From NCBI GenBank assembly GCA_038087875.1, contig CM075989.1, forward strand, positions 25,110,001 through 25,174,000: 64,000 nucleotides of DNA. Reading direction: 5' to 3'. How positions within the stretch are numbered: the stretch's first letter is position 1; each line of letters starts with the position of its first letter. This document shows positions 14,312 to 64,000 of the stretch, in pieces. The notes under the pieces are model-generated. The model searched no databases. It was given only the letters and a program-made list of their open reading frames with translations, and was not told where the DNA came from. The DNA is from Malacoraja senta (Eukaryota). The position numbers and the translations under genes were made by a program.

Positions 14312-14857
14312 AGAGTCATAGAGTGATACAGCGTGGAAACAGACCCCATCATCCCAACTTGACCACACCGCCAACATGTCCCAGCTACGCTAGTCCCAGC
14401 TGCTAGCATTTGGCCCATATCCCTCCAAACCTGCCCTATCCATGTACCTGTCTAACTGCTTCTTAAATGTTGGGATAGTCCCTGCCTCAACTACCTCCTC
14501 TGGCAGCTTGTTCCATACACCCACCACCCTCTGTGTGAAAAAGTTACCCCTCAGATTCCTATTAAATCTTTTCCCCTTCACCTTAAACCTATGTCCTCTG
14601 GTCCTTGATTCACCTACTCTGGGCAAGAGACTCTGTGCATCTACCTGATCTATTCCTCTCATGATCTTATACACCTCTATAAGATCACCCCTCATCCTCC
14701 TGCGCTCCAAGGAATAGAGTCCCAGCCTACTCAACCTCTAACTATAGCTCAGACCCTCTAGTCCTGGCAACATCCTCGTAAATCTTCTCTGTACCCTTTC
14801 CAGCTTGACAACATCTTTCCTATAACATGGTGCCCAGAACTGAACACAATACTCTAA
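14312..14857 (-). mobile_element. CR1-clade (HER1-like) LINE 3' fragment
   Basis: RLGLYSLERRRMRGDLIEVYKIM...FFTQRVVGVWNKLP; tail ends in (ACTCTATG)-like repeats. Confidence 0.88.
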
Positions 14858-17089: not shown

Positions 17090-17400
17090 AACACGCAGTG
17101 CTGGAGTAACTCAGCGGGTCAGGCAGCATCTGTGGAGAACATGGATAGGTGATGTTTCACAGAGTGCTGGAGTAACTCAGCGGGTCAGGCAGCATCTCTG
17201 GAGAACATGGATGGGTGACGTTTCACAGAGTGCTGGAGTAACTCAGCGGGTCAGGCAGCATCTCGAGAACATGGATAGGTAATTCTTCAAATTCTTCAAA
17301 TGTCACCTATCCATGCTGCTGCCTGACCTGCTGAGTTAATCCAGCACTTTGTGTCATCTTGTGTGTTAACCTAGGTGTGTCTGCAACTCCATGTTTCTAC
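17090..17400. repeat. Three tandem 66-bp pLTR-derived units followed by an inverted partial copy
   Basis: ctggagtaactcagcgggtcaggcagcatc starts at 17101, 17167 and 17233; inverted copy at 17301-17400. Confidence 0.85.
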
Positions 17401-18037: not shown

Positions 18038-18295
18038 ACAGAGTGCTGGAGTAACTCAGCGGGTCAGGCAGCATCTCCGGAGGACATGGTTAGGTGCCAT
18101 TTCGGGTCAGGGCACTCTTTCAGATTGACTTGAAACGTCACCTATCCATGTTCTCCACAGATGCTGCCTGACCCACTGAGTTACTCCAGCACTCTGTGAA
18201 ACGTCACCTATCCATGTTCTCCACAGATGCTGCCTGACCCGCTGAGTTACTCCAGCACTCTGTGCCCTTTTGTGTAAATCTACTTGTTTTTACAG
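18038..18295. repeat. Head-to-head palindrome of pLTR units (one minus copy with decayed core, two plus 66-bp copies)
   Basis: Left arm 18038-18127 is the reverse complement of the units at 18131-18265. Confidence 0.8.
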
Positions 18296-24200: not shown

Positions 24201-25361
24201 AGGTTGAATCCAAAACAGGTCCATATTATTCAAGCATAACTTTATAGTTTAGTTCAGAGATACAGCATGGAAACAGGCCATACTGACCATCGATCAGCCA
24301 TTCACACTAGTTCTACACATCTTTGGGATGTAGGAGGAAACGAGCATCCAAATAATAACCAATATTTGGAATATGCTTTGATAAATTAATAAATAGTTGA
24401 ATACAATTTGTACCTAAAGGATGCCCAATTAGAGAACTAGAGAAGAAAAACACTATTGTAGAAGAAATGTCTAAAGCTGCCTGGTAGTCTGAGGACAAAC
24501 CATCTCTGCTGCAACGTTTGACTCCATTTGCTGAATTCATTTGGGGTCTACAGATGTTGAATTGGTTCTCTCGTGGCATTGGTTGCACAAGCATTCACTC
24601 TTCTGGTGTGAGTCGTGCCAGGCACCAAAATAATGCAGGTGTTAGTTTGTCCAGAGGGAACATCTATTGGAAGAAGTCAGAGCGGGCAGATTATGGAGTT
24701 ACAGTTTGTCACCAGCAATGTCAGTTTGGAGCTTTCCTATAACTAATGGAGAGTGCAAGAACCTACCAGGACATTTTAAGTGATCATTGACCATCGGTAG
24801 GTTAGATGTTCATTCATTTTTTAAAATAATGCTACGATGTTTAATATTTACCAGAGTTCCAGAAAGTCAATCAAAGGTGGTGTTCAAAACTTCTACACAA
24901 ATCATTCTCCCAACTGTTCACCTTGGTGCAATGTGACTGGGAAAGTTGTAGGCATTGTGAGATCAAGAACCCGTGGGTAATTGCCAAGGAAGCAGGTTTA
25001 AGGAAGATCTTCCTCGGTGCAGGCTGGGGACCTTCCCCATGGCTGGTCAACAACTGAAGGATGTGAGTAGTGGTGTCATTATTATTATTTTCACCATTAC
25101 CGTTTGCAGAGCCCGGCTGCTGAAATAATGTGGGTGTTATCCATGGACTCGCAGTGCAAATCTGTAAATGGCCTTTCTGTTCATCCTCATTTAATGAATA
25201 CTTGATTTTCTTTTCTCCAAAAATGCAACAATCACATCTTCAGCAGCTTGTTCTCTCTGTAATATATTTGCCTGTCCTCATCTGTTATTTGCATCATCTG
25301 CAGGCTCTTGACTTTGTGTTTCCACACCCAAGTAGCCAGCAAAGCCCAAGGTCAAAGCTGG

Positions 25362-26107
25362 CCTGTACTGACCAGGGGTACTCCACCTGTACTGACCAGG
25401 GGTACTCCACCTGTACTGACCAGGGGTACCACACCTGTACTGACCAGGGGTATTCCACCTGTACTGACCAGGGGTACTCCACCTGTACTGACCAGGGGTA
25501 CCACACCTGTACTGACCAGGGGTACCACACCTGTACTGACCAGGAGTACCCCACCTGTACTGACCAGGGATACTACACCTGCATGGACCAGGGGTACCAC
25601 ACCTGTACTGACCAGGGGTACCACACCTGTACTGACCAGGAGTACTCCACATGTACTGACCAGGGGTACCACACCTGTACTGACCAGGGGTACCACACCT
25701 GTACTGACCAGGGGTACCACACCTGTACTGACCAGGGGTACCACACCTGTACTGACCAGGGATACTCCACCTGTACTGACCAGGGGTACTACACCTGTAC
25801 TGACCAGGAGTACTCCACCTGTACTGACCAGGGGTGCTACACCTGTACTGACCAGGGGTACCACACCTGTACTGACCAGGGGTACCACACCTGTACTGAC
25901 CAGGGGTACCACACCTGTACTGACCAGGAGTACTCCACCTGTACTGACCAGGGATACTACACCTGCATGGACCAGGGGTACCACACCTGTACTGACCAGG
26001 AGTACTCCACATGTACTGACCAGGAGTACTCCACATGTACTGACCAGGGGTACCACACCTGTACTGACCAGGGGTACTACACCTGTACTTACCAGGTGTA
26101 CTCCACC
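25362..26107. repeat. 24-bp minisatellite, ~31 copies (CCTGTACTGACCAGGGGTACCACA)
   Basis: Direct tandem units with few variant positions and no indels. Confidence 0.95.
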
Positions 26108-27489
26108 ACCTACCTTCTCCTGTCTGAGCAGCAGCAATTACCCCAGCTCCTTATTTCCAGTCCATCAACCAACCCTCTGTCCCCAAATTACACTAAACCA
26201 AGAGAACTGAGACAAAGCTTTTATTTCTCTTCATAAAAGTTGTTCATCTGTGAACATTTAAATCAAACCATAAAGGGCCGACTATTCCAGAAGTGACAGA
26301 GATGATGCATTCCAGCAAATTATATTTGTGCTTTGAAATGGGATATTGGGCCTCTGAATATGCAGTCATGCATGGAATTGAAGATTAAAAGTGCAGTAAT
26401 ACTTATTGAGAATGCGATCTGCACTCTGAATAACGTTGCTGAGACAAGACATAATAGTATGACATGCACTGCACTGTAAATGCTTAGAATGCCATGTCTT
26501 TTCTGTCACAACTGCAAAACAAAAGTACAGAGAATCGTCCCATTTAGCCAGCAGTGAGGACAAATGGTCTCACTAATAAAGTTTCTGCTTTATATAATCC
26601 AAGTGGCTGTCCCCGTCTTTGTTACAATGTTAATGGGAGATTGGTGCTTCCCACACAGACAGATCTGCAGTTAGTGAATGGGCTGACACAAAATGCTGGA
26701 GTAACTCAGCGGGACAGGCAGCATCTCTGGAGAGTAGGAATGGGTGACGTTTCTGATGGAGATCCATCTTCAGATTCAAGACTCCACACCCATGCCCCCA
26801 TTATCCCGCTTGTTACAACCTCAGCCTTGTCTTTCGTAGATCCCTGTTGCACCAACCTGTTACTGTTTACTCTGTCACCTCTTCCTTCATAATGGATTGC
26901 AGTGTTGTCTCTACGGCTGGCTTCAGGCTGATTATGCCCCTGCTTTCTCCTCCTCTTGTCTGAATCGTGCAATTACATTTGCTAACTTCCAGTGGCAACC
27001 ATTCCAGAATACAACGGTTTGGAAGATGGCATCTTCTGTCCAGAACTGTTGCTGTCACATTCAGCAGTGGTCACTAGGCCCACCTCACCACCCCAACCCC
27101 AATCATTTCCCCAGTTCCAGTTTGCTACTACTGCTAATTCCTTTGAGTTAATTCCCATTGCTCGCTCCAATGTATGTGAGGGATTTTTGTGCCTTCAGCA
27201 AAGACAGACACAAAGAAATGTGTTTAATTGTCTAGTTCCCCGGTATAATTTCTCCTGCCTCCACATGAACATTTGGGAATCTTCACCTTCTCATATTTTA
27301 GATGGTCTTAAAATCATTCGTGAGATCACTCTCATATTCTGTTTCCAACTCCTTGGCCCTTCTTTCCTAAACTCTGGACTTTCCCCAAATCTCAAGCCAT
27401 TATTTTGCTGCTGATGTTATCAACCTTTGATCCACTCCTATCTTACACCCACAGCTGGGCCATTTTTCCTGTTGGGAATTTTCTATCCT

Positions 27490-29564: not shown

Positions 29565-29782
29565 GCCTGAAGAAGGGTCTCGACCTGAAATATCACCTGT
29601 CCATATTCTCCAGAGATGCTGCCTGACCCGCTGAGTTACTCCAGCACTCTGTGAAACGTCACCTATCCATGTTCTCCACAGATGCTGCCTGACCCGCTGA
29701 GTTACTCCAGCACTCTGTGAAACGTCACCTATCCATGTTCTCTAGAGATGCTGCCTGACCCGCTGAGTTACTGCAGCACTGT
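29565..29782 (+). mobile_element. Hammerhead head plus three 66-bp tandem units, with 10-bp flanking direct repeat
   Basis: CTGAAGAAGGGTCTCGACCTGAAA at 29567-29590; GTCAAAGCTA at 29552-29561 and 29795-29804. Confidence 0.8.
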
Positions 29783-31944: not shown

Positions 31945-32200
31945 GGGGAAAGATTTAATAGGATTCTGAGGGGTAACTTTTCCACTCAAAGGGCGGTGGG
32001 TGTATGGAACGCGCTGCCGGACTTGAGGCAGGGACTATCGCAACATTTAAGAAACATTTAGACAGGTACATGGATAGGACAGGTTTAGAGGGATATGGAC
32101 CAAATGCAGGCAGGTGGGACTAGTGTAGATGGGGCATGTTGGTTGATGTGGGCATATTGTGCCAAAGGGCCTGTTTCCACGCTGTAAGACTCTGACTCTA
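31945..32200 (+). mobile_element. CR1/HER1-like 3' fragment, representative of many small copies (~18950-19345, 21850-21950, 28700-28890, 34870-35035, 40865-40960, 45860-46295, 48160-48330, 54915-55110, 57670-57980, 58745-59055, 60846-60992)
   Basis: Shared tail gacaggtacatggatagg...gagggatatgg...ggcctgtttcc. Confidence 0.75.
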
Positions 32201-32692
32201 TGAAAGAGCGAAAACAAATGAATTGCAGAGAATGTGGGGGAGAGGGATGGAAAAGTCAAGGGAATATCTGTGCTGGGAAGGGCAGGATGAGTATGGTGAT
32301 AATTGTGGAGGGCATCATGAAGATAGGTTAATGCGGGGAGTTAGAGAGGAAGGAAATGGAAAAGAAATAGAGATGAGTGCAGAGAGTGAGAATGCAACAA
32401 AAGGAAGTGGAAAGGTGTGAAACGCAGAAGGTCAGACTGTACAAATGGAGAGCAAAAACAGAGCCAAACTGACAGAAGGATGACCCTCAGTGCAACTGGC
32501 CAGATGCAATTAGCTGACCATTGAAAATTGAACCTTATGCTTACAGAATTAATTATTAAACTTGTTCCACACTAATATGATAAAAATAATTTCAAAGCAT
32601 TTTGAATCCATATTAAATATTCCATGTATGCTTATTATAGTTTAGGTTTATTATTATTATTAATGTTTAATATTGTCAGGTGTTCCGAGGTG

Positions 32693-34030
32693 ACTGATCC
32701 ACACTGACCCCCCCACTCTGACCCACACTGACCCCCCCACACTGACCCCCACACTGACCCCCCCACACTGACCCACACTGATCCAGTCCGACCCCCACAC
32801 ACTGACCCACACTGACACCCCCACACTGACCCCCCCACACTGACTCACACTGACCCCCCCACACCGACCCCCACACACTGACCCGCACTGATCCAGTCCG
32901 ACCCCCACACGCTGACTCACACTGACCCCCCCACACTGACCCCCCCACACTGACCCCCCCACACTGATCCCCCCACACTGACCCCCCCACACTGCCCCCC
33001 CCACACTGACCCCCCACACTGACTCACACTGACCCCCCCACACCGACCCCCCCACACTGACCCGCACTGATCCAGTCCGACCCCCACACGTTGACTCACA
33101 CTGACCCCCCCACACTGACCCCCCCACACTGACCCCCCACACTGACCCCCCACACTGACCCCCCACACTGACCCCCCCCACACTGACCCCCCCCCCCACA
33201 CTGACCCCCCCCCACACTGACCCCTCCCCCCCACACTGACCCCCCCACACTGACCCCCCACACACTGACCCCCCACACACTGACCCCCCCACTGCCCCCA
33301 CCACTGACCCCCCCCACCGAACCCCCCCACCGAACCCCACCCACCGACCCCCCCACACCGACCCCCCCACCGACCCCCACACCGACCCCCCCACACCGAC
33401 CCCCCCACACCGACCCCCCCACACCGACCCCCCACACCACCCCCCACACTGACCCCCCCCACACTGACCTCCCCCACACTGACCCCTCCCCCCCACACTG
33501 ACCCCCCCACACTGACCCCCCACACTGACCCCCCACACACTGACCCCCCCACTGCCCCCACCACTGATCCCCCCCACCCGAACCCCCCCACCGACCCCCC
33601 CACACCGACCCCCCCCACCGACCCCCACACCGACCCCCACACCGACCCCCACACCGACCCCCCCACACCGACCCCCCCACGCCGACCCCCCACGCCGACC
33701 CCCCACGCCGACCCCCCACGCCGACCCCCCCACACCGACCCCCCCACACCGACCCCCGCACATCGACCCCCACATCGACCCCCCCACACCGACCCCCCCA
33801 CACCGACCCCCCACACCGACCCCCCACACCGACCCCCCCACACTGACTCTCCCCACACTGACCCCCCCACATTGACCCCCCCCCGACACTGACCCGCACT
33901 GATCCACCCCGACCCCCACACACTGACTCACACTGACCCCCCACATTAACCAACACTGACCACACTGACCCCACTGACCACACTGACCCACCGCACTGAC
34001 CCAAACTGATCCCACTGACCACACTGCCCA
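32693..34030. repeat. C-rich minisatellite (ACACYGA-Cn), ~1.3 kb
   Basis: Roughly 14-16-bp units with variable C-runs. Confidence 0.95.
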
Positions 34031-35417
34031 AGCACCTCACACTTCCACAAACATTTGCGTGTCTCATTTTCCAGGCACTCTCTCCGGAAACTCTTGAGTG
34101 AAGTATTTGTGTTGCTTGAGCGGGCTGTGGGGCCACATATCATTTCCTTCATGATGTAACCGTGTACGTGATGTAATACAGTCCCTCTCACACTTCAGCA
34201 TGGTCCAAGTGATTTACGGTCCACAGAGACTCGTTCTAGTGGTTGTGTACCATGCTCACAGCTCCCACACAGGGGAGTATGCCAATGTTCAGGTCTTCTG
34301 CTTCTCTGCGTTGCTTACATTATTAAATAATGTTCAAGTATCGGTGAGAAAGAGGAGACATTTGACATCTACCTGGGAAGCCCTGCATTAACTACTGCAA
34401 CAACCAGCCATGCTCTGTATCCATGCACCATTGCATTGGTTTCTCCATTGAGTCCATGACCTGATTCAGAAACAGGAATGTCCCCAATGGAGGAGGAGCT
34501 CAGTGGGGCAAGCCAATCCCAGAGAGTCAGAAATCCAACCTCAATCTGACATTCCCTGCAAATACTTTCTTCAAATCTCTGCTAATAATCCTCAAACACA
34601 GTTACAAATGATGATAGAAACATAGACATGTATTCCATTAGGCATGTATTGAACATACACATGTATTCTACAGGCTCTATCAGCCCACCGCATCCATGCC
34701 AAAACATCCAATTTTACCTGAATTGCAAATCTCAGTCAGTAAAAGCCATTCTAATTTGACGTGCTGCTGTGATGATGTCAGGAGATTGTGTTTAAACATC
34801 ATGGGAATTTTTCCACAGTCTTTCTCTGGAATGCTTGAACAGTGTAGAAGGCTGTGGAGGCCAAGTCAATGGATATCTGTCAGGTGGAAATTGATAGATT
34901 CTTGATTAGTAAGGGCGTCAGTGGTTATGGGGAAGAAGGCAGGAGAATGGGGATTGAGAGGGAGAGATAAATCACCCATGATTGAATAGCTGTGTAGAAT
35001 CGATGGACCGAATGGCCTTATTATGCTCCTAGAATGAACTTAAGAAAGGTTATTGTTGCTGCTCCTGCTCTGGGCTGAAGCTGCTTTCATCTGTGTTCTG
35101 CACAAGATGTCATCCCACCAATGTAAAGGCTGCTTGATGCACTTCAACAAGTTGGTGGCCATTTGTTGGGTGCGCCCTGGCCTGTATTTTGATGGCAGGG
35201 CCTGACCTCTTGTCTTTCTACACAGTGGTTTGCTGTGTAGGTGTCAGCAAACTAGCGGAGAGGATTCTAAGGAATGCTTCACGTTGAGTTACCTCTGCTC
35301 GTCGTTTGTTGCAGGAAACATGAGGGAACATTCTGAAACACATCCTCTGACTTTAGCCACACCAAATATGCAAATCACCTCTTTCAACAATGAACAATAG
35401 TTAGTCTTTAGCTGAAA

Positions 35418-36828: not shown

Positions 36829-39063
36829 ACAAGGGTTCTGAACTTAAAGAAAGGTAACTTTGAGGGTATGAAATGTGAATTGGCCAAGATTGACTGGCAA
36901 TTGATTCTTAAAGGGTTGACGGTGGATATGCAATGGAAGGCATTTAAAGACTGCATGGATGAACTACAAAAATTGTTCATCCCAGTTTGGCAAAAGAATA
37001 AATCAGGGAAGGTAGTGCATCCGTGGATAACAAGGGAAATCAGGGATAGTATCAAAACAAAAGATGAAGCGTACAAATTAGCCAGAAAAAGCAGCCTACC
37101 AGAGGACTGGGAGAAATTCAGAGACCAGCAAGAGGAGGACAAAGGGCTTAATTAGGAAAGGGAAAATAGATTATGAAAGAAAACTGGCAGGGAACATAAA
37201 AACTGACTGCAAAGGTTTTTATAGATATGTGAAGAGAAAGAGATTAGTTAAAACAAATGTAGGTCCCTTGCAGTCAGAAACAGGTGAATTGATCATGGGG
37301 AACAAGGACATGGCAGACCAATTGAATGACTACTTTGGTTCTGTCTTCACTAAGGAAGACATAAATAATCTGCCGGAAATAGCAGAGGACCGCGGGTCTA
37401 ATGAGATAGAGGAACTGAGTGAAATCCAGGTTAGCCGGGAAGTGGTGTTAGGTAAATTGAATGGATTAAAGGCCGATAAATCCCCAGGGCCAGATAGGCT
37501 GCATCCCAGAGTACTTAAGGAAGTAGCCCCAGAAATAGTGGATGCATTAGTGATAATTTTTCAAAACTCCTTAGATTCTGGAGTAGTTCCTGAGGATTGG
37601 AGGGTAGCTAATGTAACCCCCTTTTTTAAAAGGGAGGGAGAGAGAAAACGGGGAATTACAGACCAGTTAATCTAACATGGGTAGTGGGGAAACTGCTAGA
37701 GTCAGTTATTAAAGATGGGATAGCAGCACATTTTGAAAGTGGTGAAATCATTGGACAAAGTCAGCATGGATCTACGAAAGGTAAATCATGTCTGACGAAT
37801 CTTACATAATTTTTCGCGGATGTAACTAGTAGAGTGGATAAGGGAGAACCAGTGGATGTGTTATATCTGGACTTTCAGAAGGCTTTCGACAAGGTCCCAC
37901 ATAAGAGATTAGTATACAAACTTAAAGCACACGGTATTGAGGGTTCAGTATTGATGTGGATAGAGAACTGGCTGGCAAACAGGAAGCAAAGAGTAGGATT
38001 AAACGGGTCCTTTTCACAATGGCAGGCAGTGACTAGTGGGATACCGCAAGGCTCAGTGCTGGGACCCCAGCTATTTACAATATATATTAATGATTTGGAC
38101 GAGGGAATTGAATGCAACATCTCCAAGTTTGCGGATGACACGAAGCTGAGGGGCAGTGTTAGCTGTGAGGAGGATGCTAGGAGGCTGCAAGGTGACTTGG
38201 ATAGGCTGGGTGAGTGGGCAAATGCATGGCAGATGCAGTATAATGTGGATAAATGTGAGGTTATCCACTTTGGTGGCAAAAACAGGAAAGTAGACTATTA
38301 TCTAAATGGTGGCCGATTAGGAAAAGGGGAGATGCAACGAGACCTGGGTGTCATGGTACACCAGACATTGAAAGTAGGCATGCAGGTGCAGCAGGCAATG
38401 AAGAAAGCGAATGGTATGTTAGCATTCATAGCAAAAGGATTTGAGTATAGGAGCAGGGAGGTTCTACTGCAGTTGTACAGGGTCTTGGTGAGACCACACC
38501 TGGAGTATTGCGTACAGTTTTGGTCTCCAAATCTGCGGAAAGACATTCTTGCCATAGAGGGAGTACAGAGAAGGTTCACCAGATTGATTCCTGGGATGTC
38601 AGGACTTTCATATGAAGAAAGACTGGATAGACTCGGCTTGTACTCGCTAGAATTTAGAAGATTGAGAGGGGATCTTATAGAAACTTACAAAATTCTTAAG
38701 GGGTTGGACAGGCTAGATGCAGGAAGATTGTTCCCAATGTTGGGGAAGTCCAGGACAAGGGGTCACAGTTTAAGGATTAAGGGGAAATCCTTTAGGACCG
38801 AGATGAGGAAAACATTTTTCACACAGAGAGTGGTGAATCTCTGGAACTCTCTGCTACAGAAGGTAATTGAGGCCAGTTCATTGGCTATATTTAAGAGGGA
38901 GTTAGATGTGGCCCTTGTGGCTAAAGGGATCAGGGGGTATGGAGAGAAGGCAGGTACAGGATACTGAGTTGGATGATCAGCCATGATCATATTGAATGGC
39001 GGTGCAGGCTCGAAGGGCTGAATGGCCTACTCCTGCACCTATTTTCCATGTTTCTATGTTTCT
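36829..39063 (+). mobile_element. Young 5'-truncated CR1-clade LINE (ORF2 reverse transcriptase, several frameshifts)
   Basis: [58 protein letters not shown]; (TTTCTATG)n tail at ~39042-39063. Confidence 0.93.
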
Positions 39064-40050: not shown

Positions 40051-41059
40051 TGCCTTTGGCCTAGAGTCAGTCTGTGGATAGGTGTGGTGAGAAGTAATAG
40101 TCCACACTCCACTCTGGACACCAATGGCAACTGGGAAATGTAAACAATGTTCTGTTATTCCATGAGCTCTGTCTCACTACAGTCATGATCTATTTTCCTT
40201 AGATGAGATGCTGATAACGTCCACGACATATAATCCTCCTGCCTTGCTTTGAGTATTACAATTAAACAGTGTCTATACAAGGCAGCGAGCGGGCCCATCC
40301 TGCAGGCAATTCCCCACAACACACATCTATCTATAAGCCCTTTATCTTTGTCCAACTCCCTCATCTCTGGGCACTCTTTATTAAATAAAATCATATTAGA
40401 AGGCTTATTGCTGTGATGTATTGAGCACAAAGATAGTTCTATGAGAGCTGACTGCCTCGTCTGACACATCAAAGCCAGGCCATGCACTCACCTCACCCTG
40501 CTCTCTCCAGCCCTGCTCTGCCTTTGAATAGACCTGGACGTTTATATAAACCACTGACATCTTGGGTCAGATTTACAAATACAAAATCAGCCAACCAATT
40601 ATCCTGATGCTACAACACGTGAAATAAACAGATTGATAAGGAGTTAATGTCCCAAACCACCAGCCGTCTGTAATGAAGGGAAAGCACAGAAATGCACTGT
40701 GTATCAACTACTGTTAAAATTAACAATACCAGAAATAAAACAAAGTATGTTCACAAATTCCTCTGGACATCCACTAACTAACACAAGATTCAGTACTGAC
40801 CCCATAGCGCAGTCTGGTGCCAATCCCACTGATACAGTCCAGTACTGATCCATCCACACAGTCACATGTCCTATCCACACCAGTCCCACCTGCCTATGTT
40901 TGGCCCATATGCCTCTAAACCTGTCCTATCCATGTACCTGTCTAAATGTTTCTTAAATGTAGAAAAAGGAGATGCAGCCAATTCCTGCTTCGGTACATTC
41001 ACCGTACATATTCCTGCCGCAGTACAGTGTTCATTGTACATATTCCTTTGGTTGGTTTC

Positions 41060-42640
41060 CAACCCAAGGATATGAACTTTGAATTCTACAATGTTAGGTA
41101 ACTAAACATCCACTCCCTCCAACCCTCTATCTTTTTCTCCCCCCCTCTCTCCCCAGTGGCCACACTGGATGTGCACCCATTTCTCCCACTATCACGCCTT
41201 ACTCCTCCCCTTCCCCATCCCGTTCCGCCAACATTCCTTCCTCTTCGCTCCATATCCCACAGCCTTGTGTCGCCTTTTCATCTTTGGCCCTTGACCAACC
41301 ATCTAATACCACCCCCTTGCCCACCTGTATCCACCTATCACTTGCAAAGCTTTGTCCCATCCTCGCCTCTTTTCGAGCTTTGCCCTCCAATCAGTCCGCA
41401 GAAAAATCCTGACCTGAAATGTCACATAGATACATAGATACATAGAAAATAGGTGCAGGAGTAGGCCATTCGGCCCTCCGAGCCTGCACCGCCATTCAAT
41501 ATGATCATGAATGATCATCCAACTCAGTATCCCGTACCTGCCTTGTCTCCATACCCCCTGATCCCTTTAGCCACAAGGGCCACATCTAACTCGCTCTTAA
41601 ATATAGCCAATGAACTGGCCTCAACTACCCTCTGTGGCAGAGAGTTCCAGAGATTCACCACTCTCTGTGTGAAAAAGTTTTTTCTCATCTCGGTCTTAAA
41701 GGATTTCCCCCTTATCCTTAAGCTGTGACCCCTTGTCCTGGACTTCCCCAACATCGGGAACAATCTTCCTGCTTCTAGCCTGTCCAACCCCATAAGAATT
41801 TTGTAAGTTTCTATAAGATCCCCTCTCAATCTCCTAAATTCTAGCGAGAATAAGCCGAGTCTATCCAGTCTTTCTTCATATGAAAGTCCTGACATCCCAG
41901 GAATCAGTCTGGTGAACCTTCTCTGCACTCCCTCTATGGCTATAATGTCCTTCCTCAGATTTGAAGACCAAAACTGTACGCAATACTCCAGGTGTGGTCT
42001 CACCAAGACCCTGTACAACTGCAGTAGAACCTCCCTGCTCCTATACTCAAATCCTTTTGCTATGAAAGGTAACATACCATTCGCTTTCTTCACTGCCTGC
42101 TGCACCTGCATGCCTACTTTCAATGACTGGTGTACCATGACACCCAGGTCTCGCTGCATCTCCCCTTTTCCTAATCGGCCACCATTTAGATAATAGTCTG
42201 CTTTCCTGTTTTTTGCCACCAAAGTGGATAACCTCACATTTATCCACATTATACTGCATCTGCCAAACATTTGCCCACTCACCCAGCCTATCCAAGTCAC
42301 CTTGCAGTCCCCTAGCATCCTCCTCACAGCTAACACTGCCCCCCAGCTTAGTGTCATCCGCAAACTTGGAGATGTTGCCTTCAATTCCCTCATCCAAATC
42401 ATTAATATAAATTGTAAATAGCTGGGGTCCCAGCACTGAGCCTTGCGGTACCCCACTAGTCACTGCCTGCCATTGTGAAAAGGACCCGTTCACTCCTACT
42501 CTTTGCTTCCTGTTTGCCAGCCAGTTCTCTATCCACATCAATACTGTCACCTATCCATGTTCTCCACAGATGCTGCCTGACCCGCTGAGTTAGTCCAACA
42601 GTTTGTATTTTGCTCAGGATTCCGGCATCTGCAGTATCTT
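41060..42640 (+). mobile_element. Penelope-like 3' fragment (41060-41425 and 42545-42640) split by a CR1 LINE
   Basis: End of an endonuclease-like ORF (ccaaggatatgaactttgaattc), pyrimidine-rich spacer, decayed core cctgacctgaaatgtcac; resumes at tgtcacctatccatgttctcc. Confidence 0.7.
41426..42546 (-). mobile_element. Young CR1-clade LINE 3' fragment, same family as 36829-39063
   Basis: Nearly identical RT C-terminal translation; (TATCTATG)n tail; TGTCAC duplicated at both ends. Confidence 0.93.
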
Positions 42641-43429: not shown

Positions 43430-43605
43430 TGGAGAACATGGATGGGTGCCGTTTCATGGAGTGCTGGAGTAACTCAGCGGGTCAGGCAGCATCTGTGGAG
43501 AACATGGATAGGTGACGTTTCACGGAGTGCTGGAGTAACTCAGCGGGTCAGGCAGCATCTCTGGAGAACATGGATAGGTGACGTTTCGGGTTGGGACCCT
43601 TCTTC
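43430..43605 (-). repeat. Tandem 66-bp pLTR units with partial hammerhead head
   Basis: Two full units plus gacgtttcgggttgggacccttcttc. Confidence 0.75.
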
Positions 43606-44941: not shown

Positions 44942-46439
44942 CCACTTGCTCAGGGGCGTTACTGATGGGCAATATAAATGCCCACATCCCAAAACATGAA
45001 TAACTAAAATAAATTGTGCCTAAACCTAGTAATGGTTTGGAAATGTGTCTTTTTTCCTGAGTTTTGCTTCAAACCCATTCACAATAGGTTTAGTGGACAG
45101 CGAAGAAGGATGTCCAAGGTTGCAACAGGATCTGGATCAACTGGGAAAGTGGGCAAGAGAATAACGGATGGAATTTAACTCAATGGCAAAGTGTTGCATT
45201 TTGGAAAGTTAAATCAGACATGGACCTACACGTTGAATGACAGGTTCCACGGCAAACCACTTGTTTCCCTCCATTATCACCACCTATCATGTTCTCCAGA
45301 AATGCTGCCTGACCCGCTGAGTTACTCCAGCACTCTGTAAAACGTCACCTATCCCTGTTCTCCACAAATGCTGCCTAACCCGCTGAGTTACTCCGGCAGT
45401 TTGTGTTTTGTATTCAGCGGGTCCGGATTCCAGCATCTGCAGTATCTTGGAGGTACGTTGAACAATAAACGTTGGGGTAAATGTAGCAGAGATAAACAAT
45501 ATGAAGAGAGAGAAAAATAGAAATGATAAGAATATCTAGACAGCATCTGCAGTTCCTTGTTATTACATTGATATTAAGCCAACTAGTCTTTTGTTGTTGA
45601 TTGGCTTTGGCTTTCAAACATTGGCAGGATTAGATGTATGATTGTTTCTGCTAACAAGATTGATAAATAAAGATTATTTACTGTAAATGTGATTCAGCGG
45701 AAGAATGAATAAATATGAAGTTTACATGAATAAATACTGGACTTGCATTTGAGCAAATTCAGCAGAATGAGACTGTTGAACACTGGGCGGTGGCCACAGT
45801 ATTCGTGACTCCTGCTCTCCTCACTGCCATCTTTCATTTGTCATTGCAATTCATGACATGTTACGGATGTACAAGATGCTGGTGAGGCTGCACTTGGAGT
45901 TTCGGTCACCCTGCTGCAGGAAGGATGTCGTTAAGCTTGGAAGAGTGCAGAGAAGATTTATGACAATGTTGCCACGACTTGAGCCTGAACTATAGGGAGA
46001 GGTCTCTATTCCTTGGAGGACAGGAAGTGTCTTTTATCCAGAGTTGGGGAATCATGAACCAGGGAGCATAGATTTAAGGGGGAAAATGCAAGGATCTTCA
46101 CACAGAGGGTCGTATGTATATGGAACGAGCTGCCAAGGAGGTAGTTGAGGCAGGTACACTTGGACAGGTACATGGATAGGAAAGGCTTAGTGGGATATGG
46201 GCTAACGCAGGCAAATGGGAATAGCTTAGATGGGGACTATTGGCCAGCATGGATGAGATGGGCCAAAGGGCCAAAGTTTCCATGTTCTGTGACTGTGACA
46301 TATTCAACCAATTTTGGCATTGCAGGAGTTTCCAGGACTATTGTTATCTGTCCAACCTATATTGCTAATAACTTTGTAGCAAACGTCAATGTAACCTGTG
46401 GTTTCTCTTGTCAACTCCATACCCAATTCCTGTTTTGCT

Positions 46440-49359: not shown

Positions 49360-49750
49360 TGTAGAAACAAAGAACTGCAGATGCTAGTTAATACACAGAA
49401 GGACACAAAGTGCTGGAGTAACTCAGTGGGTCAGCCAGCATCTCTGCAAACATGTTAGAGAGCAGGAGGAATCACAGAGGGGGAGCAGTGATAGAGAGTC
49501 TCACAGAACTGCCCTCAGAGAGAGGAGAGTCTGAAGACGAGTCTCGACCTGAAACGTTACCTATCCATGTTCTCCACAGATGCTGCCTGACCTGCTGAGT
49601 TACTCCAGCACTCTGTGAAACGTCACCTATCCATGTTCTCCAGAGATGCTGCCTGACCCACTGAGATCCTCCAGCACTCTGTGAAACGTCACCTATCCAT
49701 GTTCTCCACAGATGCTGCCTGACCCGCTGAGTTACTCCAGCACTCTGTGT
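49360..49750. mobile_element. Inverted pLTR tail (49360-49450) plus hammerhead head and three 66-bp units (49529-49750)
   Basis: CTGAAGA at 49531; GAAACG at 49551, 49617 and 49683 (66-bp period). Confidence 0.8.
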
Positions 49751-51955: not shown

Positions 51956-53949
51956 CACTGGGGTGCTCACCTCTCTGTGGGACAGGGGTCCCCCCCGGGA
52001 TGAAGCTTCTGTAGATGAAGCTCTCTGCAAGAGTTCCCTCGTTGGATGGAACCAGTCACTGACGTCGATCAGACACTGTAGGGCAAGAGGCTGTTGTGGC
52101 CATTGGAGTGTATCACTGTTATAAGGAAGGAAGTTTCGATGTCGTAAAACTGGAAGTGGCAACTATCAGGGTGAGGCTGCATCTGTGGAAGGCGACAGAG
52201 AATTAACCATTGGCCAAGTTGCCAGCGAGCTTGTTGGCCGAGCCCACACAGGAAGCTTCAGGTAATCCCCCGCTCATTCCGCTCACTCAGTCAGCAAACC
52301 AGCTTTCAGCATCTTGTGCAGTCCCTCAGGATGTTCCTGTCTCTCCCTGTTTGTTCTAACTCCGCCCAGGGGAGAGTCCTGGGTCATTGTGTATCCAAAT
52401 AATGAAGTGCCTCCAGGCCGAGGATCTACAGCAGGTCAACAGGATGTGTCTGCCCCCTCTGTGATGGTCACAGCTGGGATAGACTTGGCCACAGGTTGAG
52501 TGAGGTTGGTGCCCTCGCTATCTAACGTGTCAATGCCTGAATTTGCCAGGTGCTTCTTGATGTGACAGTGATGGCCACGAAACAACAAGCACATTGGATC
52601 TGCTCCACAGATAGCCCAGTGTCCTGCAGGCAGCACATATCATTGTTGTCTAAATGATATTCATTGTGCTGGAAATAACCGTGGCCCATTCCCCAGAGAG
52701 GGTTGGCTCCAACATGCCTGAGCCTCAGCTCCGGCTCAGACCCAAAGTCAGACCAAAGGACATGAAAGTACATTTGTGACCCACTCATTCTCTCCCACCC
52801 AACATGGGATCCCTTCAGTGCTGGTCCTGTCCTTCCCTCTGTCCACCCCGCCCTCCTTCCCATTCCCCTTCTCACTACAGTACCAGCATTCTTCCTTCTC
52901 CACTCCAATCTCTCCCCTCCACCCTCGTCTCTCCCCCACTCCATCCCCATCTCTCCCCTCCATCCCGTCTCTCCCCTCGCCCGCTCTGCTTTAACTCCTC
53001 TGCTCCGGTTTCCTCCGTGTTCCTTCTCCCTCCTTTCCCACTCCACATGATTTGTTGTCCATCCCCCTCCCGTCCTCCATTCCCAAGTGTTGGAGATGCG
53101 CTGAAGTGCACAATGAGCCTGTGAAAGTTGGTTGTGGTAATTAAAGTTTGACAAGAGGAGCGAGAAGAGGCGATGGAGGGTGAACAATGGCCACAGTGTT
53201 CGGAGTCCCCGGCCAGCCCTCCTCACTCTGGGACAGCCTTTCTTTTAGAGAACAAAAGCATTTGTTTACATGTGTTAACTCCAGCAGTCTGCAGCTTGAT
53301 GTCACAGAGCCAGGTGCAAGAACATCACTACTCATCACACCTCTCCCAGCCTAATGGGGCAGTCATTCGTCAGAACTAATAATCCACAGCCACATATGTG
53401 CACCACTTCAAAGTTACTATGTTACAATATAAATATTGTGCTCAGAAACAAATTCAAAATCATTATTTTCAATGCAGGGCAATGTCAGACAGATTAGAAC
53501 AAAATTCCTAACTTTATTTTGGTTTGAGAGGATTGTAAGGGCTTAACTCAGTGTTAATGATGGGCCTGTGATCATCAAGCTGCCACTAGGTGTTGGTCCA
53601 TCTGCCGCCCTGGCCCATGACTGGGAATAACGGAGACCAGATGAATTGGACTACTTCACTAAAATTAATTGGCACAATTAAAGTCACAAACTTTCAAACT
53701 TTAATAATTGTAAAAGGTACTGATCACAACTCCCTGACTCTGCATTGCTGGGACATAGTTTGTGAGTTAAACACTTATAAATCTTATCATCCTATTTTTT
53801 CTCCTGTGCTTTTGTTGCTTTGAGCTATAAAATACATTTCTTTAGTCTGGGTGCAAGGTTACCCAATTCCAACCTGTGGGGTGAGTTAAGAACTGCTCTG
53901 AACTGTTTGTTAAGACCCTGGATATTTGCCCATTTGTTATCCATCCTAA

Positions 53950-54165
53950 AAGTGCTGGAGTAACTCAGCGGGTCAGGCAGCATCTGTGGAGAACATGGAT
54001 AGGTGACGTTTCACAGAGTGCTGGAGTAACTCAGCGGGTCAGGCAGCATCTGTGGAGAACATGGATAGGTGACGTTTCACAGAGTGCTGGAGTAACTCAG
54101 CGGGTCAGGCAGCATCTGTGGAGAACATGGGTGGGTGATGTTTTGGGTCGGGGCCCTTCTTCAGA
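53950..54165 (-). repeat. Three 66-bp pLTR units ending in a decayed hammerhead head
   Basis: Near-identical tandem units, then ttttgggtcggggcccttcttcaga. Confidence 0.8.
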
Positions 54166-55234
54166 TGGAAAGTCCGGCAGAGCTTTGACAAATGGAATTT
54201 AATCCCAACAAATGCAAGATGCTGAATTTGGGGAAATCTAACAAGGAAGGACATACATAGTAAATAGTCGAGCACTAGGTAACATAGGGTTTCATGTCAA
54301 CCTGGTGACTTCATTTCGGACTATCAATTTATTTTAAATTCCCCAGCGTCAGTAGTGAGCTACAAATTATTGTTTTGATCCTATGGATTACTAAACTTGT
54401 AATATAACCGCTGAAATAATTCATCCCCAATGTGGGAGGATGAGAAGAGGAGCAGATTTGAGTCAGTGTTATATCATTAAGTGAATAACATTATGATAGA
54501 CGGAAAGGCTTGTAGAGTCACTGCGAGCTACGTCGCCCATATGTGTCATTGTGGCAATCTGTGAGAATTAGAAAATCATGTCCTTATTGGTCAGGTTATT
54601 GATTTACATATATTTAGCGCCCTTCTTGATTTCATTACATCTAAAGCACTTAGTACCCAATGAAGGTACTCTAGAAAGAAAAGGTGTGATAAACTGCCTC
54701 TCTAGGTTCTCTGGAGTTCAATGCAGACGATGAACTATGATGCAGTCTTGGAGTTTTGTAAACATTACCGAGGCTAATCAAGCTAAAATTATTTATGTCA
54801 CTAATTTGACAGCTGAAGTGCTCTGGATAGATCTGGGAAAGATGAAGCTAATGCCTGTACAAGAATTGATGGGATGGTGCTCATAACGTAGGGCTTCACC
54901 TGCATGGATTTCATAAGTTTATGTGATAGGAGCAGAATTAGGCCATTCAGCCCATCAAGTCTACTCTGCCATTCAATCGTGGCTGATCTATCTCTCCCTC
55001 TTAACCCCATTCTCCTGCCTTCTCCCCATAACCCCTGACACCAGTACTAATGAAGAATCTATCTATCTATGCCTTTAAAATATCCATTGTTAGCCTCCAT
55101 AGTCTTCCGGAGGTTGGGGAAGTTAGAATTAGAAAAGTTTACTCAGTGCTTCTGTGGCTCCAGAGATTTTTTCCTGGGCAGAAAGTTTTGATAAATAGAC
55201 AAAAGGATTTTCCATCTAGTGATGACCAAAAATC

Positions 55235-58400: not shown

Positions 58401-60330
58401 GTACACTGTTGCCACCCAAGACAGGACAATGCACATTTGTTAATAAAAGCTGAAGGAGTTGTAAATAGAGGAAGATGAATGACATGCAGAAAGATAAGAT
58501 TAATGTGAGAATTGTGAAATGCAGAAGATAGCAGTTGTTAGAAATATGAACTAAACAAAAGTACTTGATATATTCACCAAATCAGGTAGCAGCTGCAGAG
58601 CGAGGAAATTAGTTATTCTTACAGGTGGAATAAAAAATAATGGATTTCACCTGCATAGTGAGTGGGCTATAGAAACCCATGGTAGATTGTAAAATCAAAA
58701 TGTGGGATGAACACTGAGAATTGATCTGATCTGTACTGATCATTAAATGCTTCTGACTAGTGGGAGAGTCTAGAACCAGAGGGCACAGCCTCAGAATAAA
58801 ACGGTGTTCCTTTAGATAGGAGACGAGAAGGAATTTCTGTCGCCAGAGGGTGGTGAATCTATGGGATTCATTACCAAGGTTGGCTGTGGAGGCCGTCGTT
58901 TGGTATTTTTAACGCGGAGATTGAAAGGTTCTAGTTTAGTAAGGTATCAAAGGTTACAGGGAGAATGCAGGAAAATGGGGTTGGGGAAAGATAGATCAAT
59001 CATGATTGAATGGCGGAGTAGACTAGATGGGCCGAATGCTCCTATAACTTATGAAGATTATTTTACTGGCAAATCCGATGAACACTGACAAGTGAATATT
59101 AATGCACAGTGATTGTAAACTTAAAAGGAGAGTGATCATTGAAGGCTGATCAATAATGATCGTAAAATACAATATGTATTGGTTAATTTTGCTTGCAAAA
59201 TTTGATGTAGTTAAGAGAAGGCTGATGGATATCGATTTTAAAAATTACATTGGACAATCATTTTAGAAAGATGATAGATATTATTTTCAAAATAAGATGT
59301 GCACTGAACTCTGAAATTTAATGGATATTAATTGTAAAATAAGATTGTTTTTGATCATTGAATGTTGATCAATATGATTGTAAAATCAAATGGATGCTGA
59401 TTATAGATAATGGGTGATGATTCTAAAATCAGATATGATTATTGAATCAAGGTGATTATTAAAAGCTTGTAAAAATTACATTCTTTTTTATAGGCTGATT
59501 GAACTTGACTACAGAACCAGATGAAAAGTGCTTACTGAAAATCTCGGATATTTATTTTTAAATCAGATGAATAAAAGAATGCTAATGGATATTGATTTAA
59601 AAATTAATGGTTGATTTTTGAAACTTGATGGGTATTGATCATAATCATTGGATGGATATTTATTATAAAATCAGATGGACATTAATTATTACACGCTGCT
59701 GAATTTTAATTATATATTGTAGTGAATACCAATATTAGAAGTCTAATTGTTATTGATTATGAAATATGATGGATGATGATTACACAAAGCTGGTGGATAT
59801 GAATCTGAAAATGTGGACACTGTCTTACAGCAGGCTGAGGAGTACACTGTGAAATGGATTGACTTGGATTATTGAAGAATGACAGATATTGAATATTAAA
59901 TTGATATTATATTGATCACTGAAAGGCCAATGATACCTGCAATAAAGTATCAATCAATCAATGTAAAATCAGGTGAACACTAATTATTAAAAGTTGCTGG
60001 CTTTTGATCGTAAAGTCCGATGTACACTGATTGTTGAAAGCTGCTGGATGTTGCATGTCTCATTGAACGGATAGAGATTATTGATAAATGCTCCATTTTG
60101 ATTTTAAAATTGTATCAACAATTTGTTGATTACTGATTGATATTGACTGCAAAATTGGATGGTTACAAGGTAGTGAACACCAATGTAGATTGGTGTAGAA
60201 CTCATGTAGATTGGATGGAAGATTATTATTTAAATATGTTGGACATTGATTGCAAAATTGGATGGTTAAGACTTATGGATTAATAATGTACATTGGATGG
60301 AAAGTTATTGTTTAAACTAATGGGTATTGT
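55455..60330. repeat. Highly degenerate ~47-bp AT-rich satellite, interrupted by LINE fragments
   Basis: Recurrent GATGGATATTGATTGTAAAATCA-GATGGACACTGATTATTGAAAGCT; anchor spacings 59287/59334/59380 (47, 46) and 59963/60010 (47). Confidence 0.8.
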
Positions 60331-60462
60331 TCCCTAAGACTTGGAACTGGGTGGTGGGAACATGGAGCCAGCTGCCAGGGTAGGTGAGGGGTGCAGGTGA
60401 GAGATTCGGACATTGGGAGGTCAGAACACAGAGTGCAAAGTATAGAGAGGAATGGGGAGCAA

Positions 60463-60479
60463 AGGTCATTAATAGGTCA
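60463..60479 (+). promoter_or_regulatory. Perfect DR5 nuclear-receptor element (candidate retinoic-acid response element)
   Basis: AGGTCA-ttaat-AGGTCA; more AGGTCA at 60418 and 60502 and AGGTTA at 60484. The motif is certain; function is inferred. Confidence 0.5.
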
Positions 60480-60621
60480 GCAAAGGTTAACAGTCAGTAA
60501 AAGGTCAGCAAAGTGTCCAGAGAAATGGGAAAGTTTGGACAGAGATGTCCACATGGCGGTTTAGGCATGAGAGAGAGAGAGAGATTTGGACAGGGAAGGG
60601 CTTAAACATGAGAGTTTCTAA

Positions 60622-60731
60622 CAGTGGGTGAGTTTCAGACAGTGAGTGAGTTTCGGACAGTGAGTGAGTTTCGGACAGTGAGTGAGTTCGGACAGTGAGT
60701 GAGTTTCGGACAGTGGGTGAGTTTCGGAGTT
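60622..60731. repeat. 18-bp tandem repeat (CAGTGAGTGAGTTTCGGA), 5-6 copies
   Basis: Direct tandem units. Confidence 0.88.
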
Positions 60732-61204
60732 TCGGCCAGTGAGGGATGGGGAGAGATGTAATACTGGCGGGTAACTCGAGCGCTGACCAAGACTCGGAAA
60801 CCGAGAAAATCGGACAGTCGGTGAGAAACATCAACAGTGATTTCGGTCATAGAGTGATGCAGTATGGAAGCAGGCCCTTCGGCTCACACCGGCTAACATG
60901 CCCCCTCTACGCTAGTCCCACCTGCCCGCATTTGGTGTATATCCCTCCAAACTTGTCCTATCCGTGTACCTGTCTAACCGTTTATTAAACATTGCGTAAA
61001 CGGGCCGAGGGAGTTTGAACCATTCTAGTAATTAATGTTTCCACACCTCAGATACAGCGCGAGAGAGAGAGCGCGATGGGGGCAGCGAGACCCTCGGGCA
61101 CTGCGCTCCGGACACGGGGACCGGGTCAATGGGAGGGGGGGTGGGTGGCGGAGTGGGGGAGCGTGGGGACTGTGAGAGGTGGGAGTAAAGGCTGCGAAGG
61201 GGGT

Positions 61205-61712
61205 GGAACTATGGGGGTAGGACTATGGGGGTACAGGGGCAGTGGGGGGGGGACAGTGAGGATATTTGGGCCGTGTGGAGGGGGGGTAGGGACTATGGGG
61301 GTACAGGGGCAGTGGGGGGGGTAGGGTCTATGGGAGTATTGGGGCAATGTGGGGGGGTGGGACAGTGAGATTTGGGCCGTGTGGGGAGGGTAGGGACTAT
61401 GGGGGTACAGGGGCAGTGTGGGGGTGTGTGTAGGGACTATGGGGAAGGGGTAGTGTGGGGGGGGTAGGGACTATGGGGGTACATGGGGCAGTGTGGGAGG
61501 GGGTAGGGACTATGGGGGTACAGGGGCAGTGGGGGCAGTGGGGGCAGGTAGGGACTATGGGGGTACAGGGGCAGTGGGGGGGTAGGGACCATAGGGGTAC
61601 AGGGGCAGTGGGGGGGGTAGGGACTATGGGGGTACAGGGGCAGTGGGGGGGTAGGAACTATGGGGGTACAGGGGCAGTGTGGGGGGGGTAGGGACTATGG
61701 GGAAGGGGCAGT
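61205..61712. repeat. G-rich ~33-36-bp minisatellite (GTAGGGACTATGGGGGTACAGGGGCAGTGn) upstream of ALDH1A3
   Basis: A dozen or more tandem units. Confidence 0.9.
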
Positions 61713-61849
61713 GAGCACACTGACGGTCTCGGCAGATTGACCAGGTGGACACATGGCGGATAATGTCAGCGCCGAGACAAGTATCGCTGCGCCTCCAATG
61801 TCCAACTCTTCCCCGGGTTCCCAGCCTCGGCTCCGGACACCAGGACACT

Positions 61850-61968
61850 GGGAACTGCAGGCGCTAGTTTACCAAAACAGACACAATGTGCTGGAGTAAC
61901 TCAGGGGTCGGCAGCATCACTGGAGAACATGGATCGGTGACGTTTCGGGTGGCGACCCTGCTTCAGAT
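61850..61968 (-). mobile_element. pLTR/hammerhead-derived insertion in the ALDH1A3 proximal promoter region
   Basis: ggaactgcag...tgctggagtaactcag...gacgtttcgggtggcgaccctgcttcaga. Confidence 0.75.
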
Positions 61969-62149
61969 TTCTTTCTCCTCCTTTCTCCCTCATCTTTAGC
62001 TGTGGATGGGGCAGGGTTGGGGTTCGATGGTCCACCCACCTGCCCGCCTGCCCACCCACCTATGTGGGCGCTGGGTCACCTGTACGACAGGTCGCGGCGC
62101 TGGGACGGCAATGAATGAATGAATGAAGGGGAGTCTGTGCCAGGAGTGT

Positions 62150-62225
62150 CGCTTTAAAACAGGCGGGACCGGCTGCCTGAGGTGGGACCGACCAATGGGT
62201 GTCTGTAGCCCGGCGCTTAAAGCCC
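62150..62225 (+). promoter_or_regulatory. ALDH1A3 core promoter: GC box, CCAAT box, TATA-like element
   Basis: aggcgggacc at 62161-62170, CCAAT at 62192-62196, cTTAAAg at 62216-62222; implies a transcription start near 62245-62255, ~45 nt before the ATG. Confidence 0.6.
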
Positions 62226-62296
62226 GCAAACCTGACCGACAGACAGCTCGATCCCGCTCCCGCACCGTCAGACTGAGGCAACGGGGCAGCGCGGCC

Positions 62297-62410
62297 ATGG
62301 CGGAGAACGGAGTGACGGACAACGGGGAGGTGGGCAGCGGGGAGATGGGCCGAGCGGCCCCGGCACCGCCGCCGAGACCCGCGAAAAACCTGCGGGTCAA
62401 GTACACCAAG
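62297..62410 (+). CDS. ALDH1A3: Aldehyde dehydrogenase 1A3 (retinaldehyde dehydrogenase 3), first coding exon
   Basis: Strong Kozak context gcggccATGG. Encodes MAENGVTDNGEVGSGEMGRAAPAPPPRPAKNLRVKYTK then GT, matching the human N-terminus as recalled ([33 protein letters not shown]|intron, phase 0). CpG-rich context and synteny downstream of ASB7 support the call. Confidence 0.9.
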
Positions 62411-62420
62411 GTGCCGTGAG

Positions 62421-63123
62421 AGGGTCGGTGGGTGGATGCGGGGTGAGGGTGGGGGGTGTGGGTGGGTGCGGGGTGTGGGTGGGTGGATGCGGGGTGTGGG
62501 TGGGGGGTGTGGGTGGATGCGGGGTGTGGGTGGGGGGTGTGGGTGGATGCGGGGTGTGGGTGGGTGCGGGGTCGGTGGGTGCGGGGTGAGGGTGGGTGGG
62601 TGCGGGGTGAGGGAGGGTGGGTGCGGGGTGAGGGAGGGTGCGGGTGAGGGTGGGTGCGGGGTGTGGGAGGGTGGGTGCGGGGTGTGGGTGGGTGCGGGGT
62701 GTGGGTGGGTGCGGGGTGAGGGAGGGTGGGTGCGGGGTGTGGGTGGGTGCGGGGTGTGGGTGGGTGCGGGGTGAGGGAGGGTGGGTGCGGGGTGAGGGTG
62801 GGTGGGTGCGGGGTGAGGGTGGGTGCGGGGTGGGTGGTGGGTGCGGGTGAGGGTGGGTGCGGGGTGCGGGGTGAGGGTGGGTGCGGGGTGCGGGGTGGGT
62901 GCGGGGTCGGTGGGTGCGGGGTGTGGGTGGGTGGGTGAGGGTGGGTGCGGGGTCGGTGGGTGCGGGGTGTGGGTGGGTGAGTGAGGGTGGGTGCGGGGTC
63001 GGTGGGTGCGGGGTGTGGGTGGGTGGGTGAGGGTGGGTGCGGGGTGAGGGTGGGTGCGGGGTCGGTGGGTGCGGGGTGTGGGTGGGTGAGTGAGGGTGGG
63101 TGCGGGGTGAGGGTGGGTGGGTG
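62421..63123. repeat. G-rich tandem repeat (GGGTGGGTGCGGGGTGW) at the start of ALDH1A3 intron 1
   Basis: About 700 bp of GGGT-based units beginning 10 nt after the donor site. Confidence 0.93.
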
Positions 63124-64000
63124 AGATGGGCAGCGATGGGCGGGCTCTGTGATTGGGGTTCGGTGCTGAGCTGTGTGATCCGAATCCAATGCGGATTGTG
63201 ACGGGTCGGGCAGCAACTGTGGAGGGAATGGACAGCGGGACTGATGCTTCTTCAGACTCTGTCTGAGTTGATGAGTTCCTCCAGTATTTTGTCTTTTGTT
63301 CAGGATCCTAGTATCTGCAGTTCAATGTGTCTCCAATGAGGAACCGGAGCGGTTTCCAGTCTCCGCCGTGAACGGGTGGGACAAGTTGTCCCGTGTGTAG
63401 TCCGGGTGCGAGCTGAACGTCCCGGGGGGGGGGGGGGGGGGGAGTAGGGGAATCGAGGACTAGAGGACATAGGTTCAAGGTGAAGGAGCCGGGTGGTGGA
63501 GGGTGGTGGTGGGGGGGGAGCCGGGAACTTGCAGCAACTGATGCCGGGTGGAGTTTCGCTGCTCGCGGGTCTTGGTTACAAGACTCTGGCGACGTTACCC
63601 TGATCCGGAGTGAGTCTGGACCCGGGACCCTGCAAATTATCATGGGAACATGTACAGGAACAGGCCCTTCGGCCCACAGTGTCCCTATCCAACACGATGC
63701 CACCCGTGGGGTGGACGTGGTCACAGTGCGAGAGGAGGGGGTCGCAGTGGGGGGGGGGGGATTTCCCTGGATGGCGCCTGGGTGGGAACGCCACGCCGGC
63801 GAGGAGAGACCAGGCGCTGCCCGAGTTTTCTCGGAGCGGAGGAGTCTCGACCATTGCATCTCTCCACAGATGCTGCCCGACCCGCTGAGTTCCTCCAGCA
63901 TTATGTGTCTGCCTTTGTCTGAGGAAGGTTCTGTATGTACACAATTGTGAGCGGCGCGGGAGAGATGGGAACACACGTTTGTTTCCCTTTAGCGGAGTCT

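Follow-up and report, generated by a model that had tools for sequence, protein, structure and literature searches.

Upstream of a gene for a retinoic acid (RA) synthesizing enzyme, the DNA of the skate Malacoraja senta contains a perfect DR5, AGGTCA-TTAAT-AGGTCA, which lies within a cluster of further AGGTCA half-sites. This raises the question of whether RA acts through this element directly on its own synthesis gene, as put forward in the original prediction on this locus, or whether the cluster is a by-product of the repetitive DNA in which it is embedded. We address this question by asking which gene lies downstream, which motifs are present, how the cluster and its surroundings are built, and how often such a cluster would be expected by chance. 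Throughout, the window refers to the whole stretch of DNA that was analysed (64,000 nucleotides), and the coordinates of the features under discussion are compiled in Table 1.

Results

Identity of the downstream gene

Coding exon 1 (38 aa) is the sole coding part of the downstream gene that lies inside the window. Among solved structures (PDB), this exon matched human ALDH1A3 only; the matches were weak (E = 0.05-0.07), colinear through the PRP.(R/K)NL.VK.TK end, and included no ALDH1A1 or ALDH1A2 chain. About 58 kb further upstream, on the same strand and with no called genes between, we found the large coding exon of ASB7, which shares 98% identity with the ASB7 sequences of the elasmobranchs Mobula hypostoma, Carcharodon carcharias and Narcine bancroftii (E = 1e-117 to 1e-124). 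The gene order lins1-asb7-aldh1a3-lrrk1, with asb7 as the upstream neighbour, is conserved in vertebrates (PMC2682703). From the exon 1 matches together with this asb7-aldh1a3 synteny we conclude that the downstream gene is ALDH1A3, as originally predicted, and the predicted distance of 1.8 kb agrees with the 1.83 kb that we measured from the DR5 to the start codon at 62297.

The promoter of ALDH1A3 is CpG-rich, and a putative core promoter could be read from its sequence (Table 1). At 62123, upstream of the ALDH1A3 start and in frame with it without an intervening stop, a further ATG opens a 98-aa ORF (62123-62419, plus strand) that spans exon 1; this ATG probably lies 5' of the TSS. No record of the 98-aa ORF was found by exact look-up, and a homologue search with it gave no match at E <= 10. 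When the 38-aa exon 1 was used as a (short) query in an exhaustive phmmer search, a single match was returned, a 1745-aa repeat protein (P0121; no Pfam family, BLASTP E = 96), which was rejected as false. Two spurious ORFs run over the half-site cluster (109 aa on the minus strand, 57 aa on the plus strand); neither is on record by exact look-up, and the 109-aa ORF gave no match in a homologue search. Likewise, scanning metagenome contigs with an exact 28-mer yielded no match.

Table 1 Features of the window discussed in the text, in order of position.
Feature	Position	Strand	Basis or remark
ASB7, large coding exon, ankyrin repeats	4070-4651	+	98% identity to elasmobranch ASB7
LINE 3' coding-end fragment (RVVG.W..LP region)	60349-60400	+	81% over 37 bp to 14493-14529
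AGGTCA half-sites	60418-60423, 60463-60468, 60474-60479, 60502-60507	+	exact positions confirmed
Isolated AGGTCA half-site, 45 bp upstream of the DR5	60418-60423	+	
AAAGGTCA, NBRE-type extended half-site, overlaps the 5' half of the DR5	60461-60468	+	
Perfect DR5, AGGTCA-TTAAT-AGGTCA	60463-60479	+	
Two tandem 28-bp units	60463-60490, 60491-60518	+	20/28 identical, inner register ~10-11 bp
DR4-like AGGTCA-GCAA-AGGTTA	60474-60489	+	second hexamer not consensus RGKTCA
AGGTTA	60484-60489	+	position confirmed
Decayed DR5 duplicate, CAGTCA-GTAAA-AGGTCA	60491-60507	+	family D6, 19/21
3' half-site of the decayed DR5 duplicate in AAAGGTCA context	60500-60507	+	
18-bp minisatellite (GAGTTTCGGACAGTGAGT, ~6.6 copies)	60612-60744	+	TRF score 192, 93% matches
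LINE 3' end, facing the 60349 fragment	60846-60996	-	77-81% identity to four copies
G-rich 34-bp minisatellite between cluster and promoter	61213-61713	+	
Copy of a very abundant ~66-bp short interspersed unit	61851-61971	+	33 matches in the window
Putative core promoter: CCAAT box and TATA-like CTTAAAG, ~70-105 bp before the ATG	62186-62230	+	inference from sequence reading
ALDH1A3 coding exon 1, 38 codons, then GT donor	62297-62410	+	PDB matches and synteny

Half-sites and the perfect DR5

The AGGTCA and AGGTTA half-sites and the perfect DR5 lie, to the base, where the original prediction had placed them, and the same applies to the NBRE contexts that it had assigned to two of the half-sites. 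With two RGKTCA half-sites in direct orientation and a 5-bp spacer, the element at 60463-60479 conforms in sequence to a DR5-type RARE, and it is the sole perfect AGGTCA direct repeat with a spacer of 0-8 on either strand of the 64 kb. Relaxing the half-site to RGKTCA yielded one extra DR5 in the window, at 14146 on the minus strand, with about 0.3 relaxed DR5s per window expected by chance (our estimate from half-site density). This RARB-type element, AGTTCA-TCAAG-GGTTCA (14146-14130), adjoins a LINE 3' end and lies about 48 kb upstream of ALDH1A3.

The AAAGGTCA octamer, which is the NBRE, the monomer site of NR4A, occurs just twice in the whole window, both times inside the cluster, and no perfect RORE or ERRE was found there. 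The DR5 spacer and its flanks are A/T-rich, and the cluster as a whole is CpG-poor DNA outside the promoter CpG island. AGGTCA is not enriched window-wide (36 sites observed versus 46 expected). Judged by established half-site rules and the consensus, RAR/RXR would be expected to bind the naked DNA of the cluster with high affinity, and NR4A, NR2F and other nuclear receptors that read AGGTCA could bind it as well.

Internal duplications of the cluster

The original prediction had also described the cluster as built from micro-duplications, and repeated segments of several lengths confirm this. An exact 9-mer, AGCAAAGGT, occurs twice at a distance of 21 bp (60458 and 60479) and an exact 12-mer, AGGTCAGCAAAG, twice at a distance of 28 bp (60474 and 60502), while the 21-mer at 60465-60485 recurs at 60493-60513 with 19 of 21 positions identical (90%). 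These recurrences are joined by the two tandem 28-bp units (Table 1), and 60420-60456 is 70% alike to 60493-60529. When the repeats are put in register, the sequence runs AGGTCAttaat / AGGTCAgcaa / AGGTTAac / AGTCAgtaaa / AGGTCAgcaa, that is, as head-to-tail copies whose identity reaches past the AGGTCA motif, as in a slippage array. The perfect DR5 itself has a sister copy, the 5' half-site of which has decayed to CAGTCA. TRF at score 30 made no call for the array at 60463-60518, which is too degenerate.

Since the 9-mer, the 12-mer, the 21-mer and the 28-bp units all recur, the half-sites are not independent of each other. Moreover, the identity extends beyond the hexamers, which suggests that they arose by recent copying rather than by selection on the hexamers alone. 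A dispersed-repeat origin of the cluster was considered and rejected: apart from the 37-bp LINE piece, 60300-60800 has no other copy in the window, and the 12-mer unit is local only.

Repeat surroundings of the cluster

Repeats make up most of the 4 kb that precede the promoter. An AT-rich, internally repetitive stretch runs up to about 60340 and is followed by the first of the two LINE 3' fragments listed in Table 1 (local alignment of 60349-60400 with the minus-strand LINE copy at 14300-14620, z = 6.1); the second fragment, at 60846-60996, matches four LINE copies in the window (14315-14467, 32039-32193, 40864-40957 and 21859-21950). The cluster is thus wedged between two facing LINE 3' fragments. 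LINE homology of the first fragment was not detectable past about 60400, and the AGGTCA stretch could not be explained as a diverged LINE 3' end, as 60400-60530 scored no better than shuffles against four LINE tails; 3'-end homology is therefore seen in the two flanking fragments and not in the cluster itself. LINE copies with reverse-transcriptase-region ORFs and a conserved RVV..W..LP motif at the C terminus, located at 37229-38967 (plus strand), 41524-42550 (minus), 14390-14734 (minus) and 46000-46300 (plus), served as references for the flanking fragments.

Diverged pieces resembling the 18-bp minisatellite unit (families D1, D2, D4 and D7) bracket the cluster at 60398-60417, 60519-60545 and 60567-60611. 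Because such diverged units are present on both sides, we place the cluster in the decayed flank of the 18-bp minisatellite. Arrays that adjoin LINE 3' ends, such as 60612-60744 next to the LINE end at 60846 and the larger array near 32193, resemble LINE-tail-associated minisatellites, whereas the AGGTCA stretch itself is without demonstrable LINE homology.

Other repeats of the window were noted along the way. The abundant unit of about 66 bp often forms tandem dimers or trimers (17158-17280, 18132-18264, 29653-29779, 43461-43605, 49530-49750 and 53949-54166); the copy at 61851-61971 precedes the ALDH1A3 ATG by about 330-450 bp, and another is found in intron 1 (63851-63916). At the start of intron 1 lies a G-rich minisatellite with a 17-bp unit, about 700 bp in length (62430-63119, plus strand); in the opposite orientation it shows about 70% similarity to 33328-33944, part of a larger array (32660-34136) that begins about 470 bp from the LINE 3' end at 32039-32193. 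A minisatellite with a period of 24 bp at 25130-26236, in which several frames are open (TCTDQGY-type repeats), accounts for the peak seen at period 24, where 578 same-hexamer repeats were counted.

Chance expectation

Under a first-order Markov null, none of 150 simulated windows contained four AGGTCA within 90 bp (analytic expectation about 8e-5 per window), and a perfect DR5 was present in 4 of the 150 (about 1-3%). The window itself is rich in local duplication: tandem arrays make up 10.8% of its length and 26.5% of the part between 58 and 64 kb, and identical complex hexamers at a spacing of exactly 11 bp were counted 34 times against 10.6 expected, which is three times the null. Same-strand clusters of four copies within 90 bp were formed by 86 of the 3528 complex hexamers (2.4%), compared to 0-1 in simulations. 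The Markov null ignores local duplication, and a cluster of any given hexamer is therefore a per-cent-level event per window here. From this we conclude that the AGGTCA cluster is improbable in comparison with random sequence, but not in comparison with the window's own repeat structure; in a genome of this kind, such clusters of a given hexamer should number of the order of a thousand.

What is left as a coincidence is the position beside an RA-synthesis gene. According to a rough estimate under a repeat-aware null, chance alone would provide a few percent of such genomes with a perfect DR5 in the 2 kb preceding one of about 30 RA-pathway genes. The position is thus suggestive, but not compelling, especially as it was chosen after the fact.

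Discussion

The reading that we favour, with a probability of roughly 60%, is that the AGGTCA cluster is a by-product of slippage and has no selected role in the control of ALDH1A3. The cluster would represent a short degenerate tandem array, with units of about 10-11 bp nested in the 28-bp units, which replication slippage or small duplications would have built in repeat-derived DNA; the setting would be the decayed edge of the 18-bp minisatellite, between the two facing LINE 3' fragments. A unit of 10-11 bp that carries AGGTCA, once duplicated, gives DR4 or DR5 spacing, so that a single duplication would suffice for a perfect DR5, without selection. An old and constrained element is disfavoured by the LINE and minisatellite setting, the recently copied half-sites and the already decayed DR5 duplicate, and the duplicated flanks with the decayed sister copy fit neutral turnover. 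Against the by-product reading, ALDH1A3 is exactly the type of gene that is expected to bear a RARE, a perfect DR5 so close to an RA-pathway gene would arise in only a few percent of genomes, and four consensus half-sites together with two NBRE contexts amount to an unusually strong predicted site.

The main alternative is a lineage-specific working RARE that was likewise born by slippage in repeat DNA but then kept, with RAR/RXR on the DR5 tuning ALDH1A3 up or down, a possibility that we regard as doubtful. In its favour, the DR5 is perfect and the only such element in 64 kb, further half-sites are nearby, and so is the CpG-rich ALDH1A3 promoter. In addition, there is precedent for control of ALDH1A genes by RA and RAR. 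For human cells, a review describes RA/RAR-RXR feedback on ALDH1A3 and its control by RAR-RXR/YAP (PMC9857290, citing Bauzone et al. 2021); in zebrafish, RARaa ChIP-seq sites were assigned to aldh1a3 (PMC11040003); and the Aldh1a2 promoter contains a conserved single RARE half-site next to the TATA box (PMC4008585). Repeat-borne RAREs exist as well, since DR2 elements carried by Alu can act as RAREs and some of them bind RAR in vivo (PMC1785376). On the other side, the presence of a motif alone predicts RAR occupancy poorly, because in mouse cells RAR leaves at least 150,000 good DR2/DR5 matches unbound and occupies fewer than 2,000 sites (PMC3091300). The same duplicated flanks and decayed sister copy that match neutral turnover, and the location of the cluster in repeat-derived DNA that is poor in CpG and lies beyond the promoter CpG island, also speak against a working RARE. 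As for the RA feedback proposed in the original prediction, the qualification that it is possibly lineage-specific is its best-supported part.

The validated DR5 RAREs of RARB, CYP26A1 and HOXA1 are imperfect, with GTTCA-type halves, and are deeply conserved and experimentally validated, which further weakens the case for a working RARE in the skate. The skate element shares with them the two direct RGKTCA half-sites, the 5-bp spacer and the location upstream of an RA-pathway gene, whereas it differs in being a perfect AGGTCA pair in repeat-derived DNA. Another parallel is offered by the DR2 RAREs of primate Alu elements (PMC1785376), which are also consensus direct repeats that arose in repetitive DNA, and which are partly RAR-bound and lineage-specific. 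However, Alu is a dispersed SINE and its DR2 elements originated by CpG deamination, whereas the skate cluster is a local slippage array, single-copy within the window and with DR5 spacing. With the known cases of RA feedback on ALDH1A genes (PMC4008585, PMC11040003 and PMC9857290) the skate element would share the proposed logic of a product acting on its own synthesis gene via RAR/RXR; the known cases are backed by data on binding and expression. The Aldh1a2 site, a conserved single half-site by the TATA box (PMC4008585), is also unlike the distal perfect DR5 of the skate.

A more specific form of the working-RARE reading is that slippage of an 11-bp unit in a LINE-associated minisatellite gave rise to the element de novo in skates and wired ALDH1A3 into direct RA autoregulation, possibly with participation of NR4A via the two AAAGGTCA octamers; we consider this still less probable and, overall, unlikely.

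The cluster might instead serve other readers of AGGTCA than RAR, which we judge to be improbable. DR5 elements mediate the action of NR4A-RXR heterodimers, and NR2F factors recognise direct repeats of various kinds. Candidates would be NR4A, either as a monomer on AAAGGTCA or together with RXR on the DR5, as well as ROR/Rev-erb for the half-sites flanked by A/T and COUP-TF/NR2F for the direct repeats. That the only two AAAGGTCA octamers of the window sit in the cluster and that spacer and flanks are A/T-rich is consistent with such a role, but the arguments for a neutral origin apply equally here, the cluster lacks a perfect RORE or ERRE, and no link of NR4A, ROR or NR2F to ALDH1A3 was found in the literature searched. 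Least probable by far is an ancient RARE common to cartilaginous fishes or vertebrates that was later ringed by repeat insertions: RAR binding near zebrafish aldh1a3 suggests old RA control (PMC11040003), but the recently duplicated flanks are common to the element and its neighbours, the location is between LINE fragments in minisatellite DNA, and neither the rest of the window nor the collections searched contained a similar sequence.

In the by-product reading, both the slippage origin and the absence of function are inferred from the duplications and the repeat context described above. If the site does not work, which is the more likely case, the locus calls for caution, as perfect elements and half-site clusters arise readily by tandem duplication in a repeat-rich genome, and motif quality together with a plausible neighbour gene is therefore not evidence of regulation. 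Even if the skate site works, DR5 RAREs as a kind and RA feedback on ALDH1A genes, in mammals and zebrafish, are already known. A working site would nevertheless be a clean case of a nuclear-receptor enhancer made by micro-duplication, and it would constitute a lineage-specific feedback loop on RA synthesis in a cartilaginous fish, which would bear on the tuning of RA gradients in the development of the skate fin, eye and nasal region. If, in particular, the RARE was indeed born de novo, the locus would offer a dated and mechanistically transparent example of the birth of an enhancer from a tandem repeat in developmental signalling.
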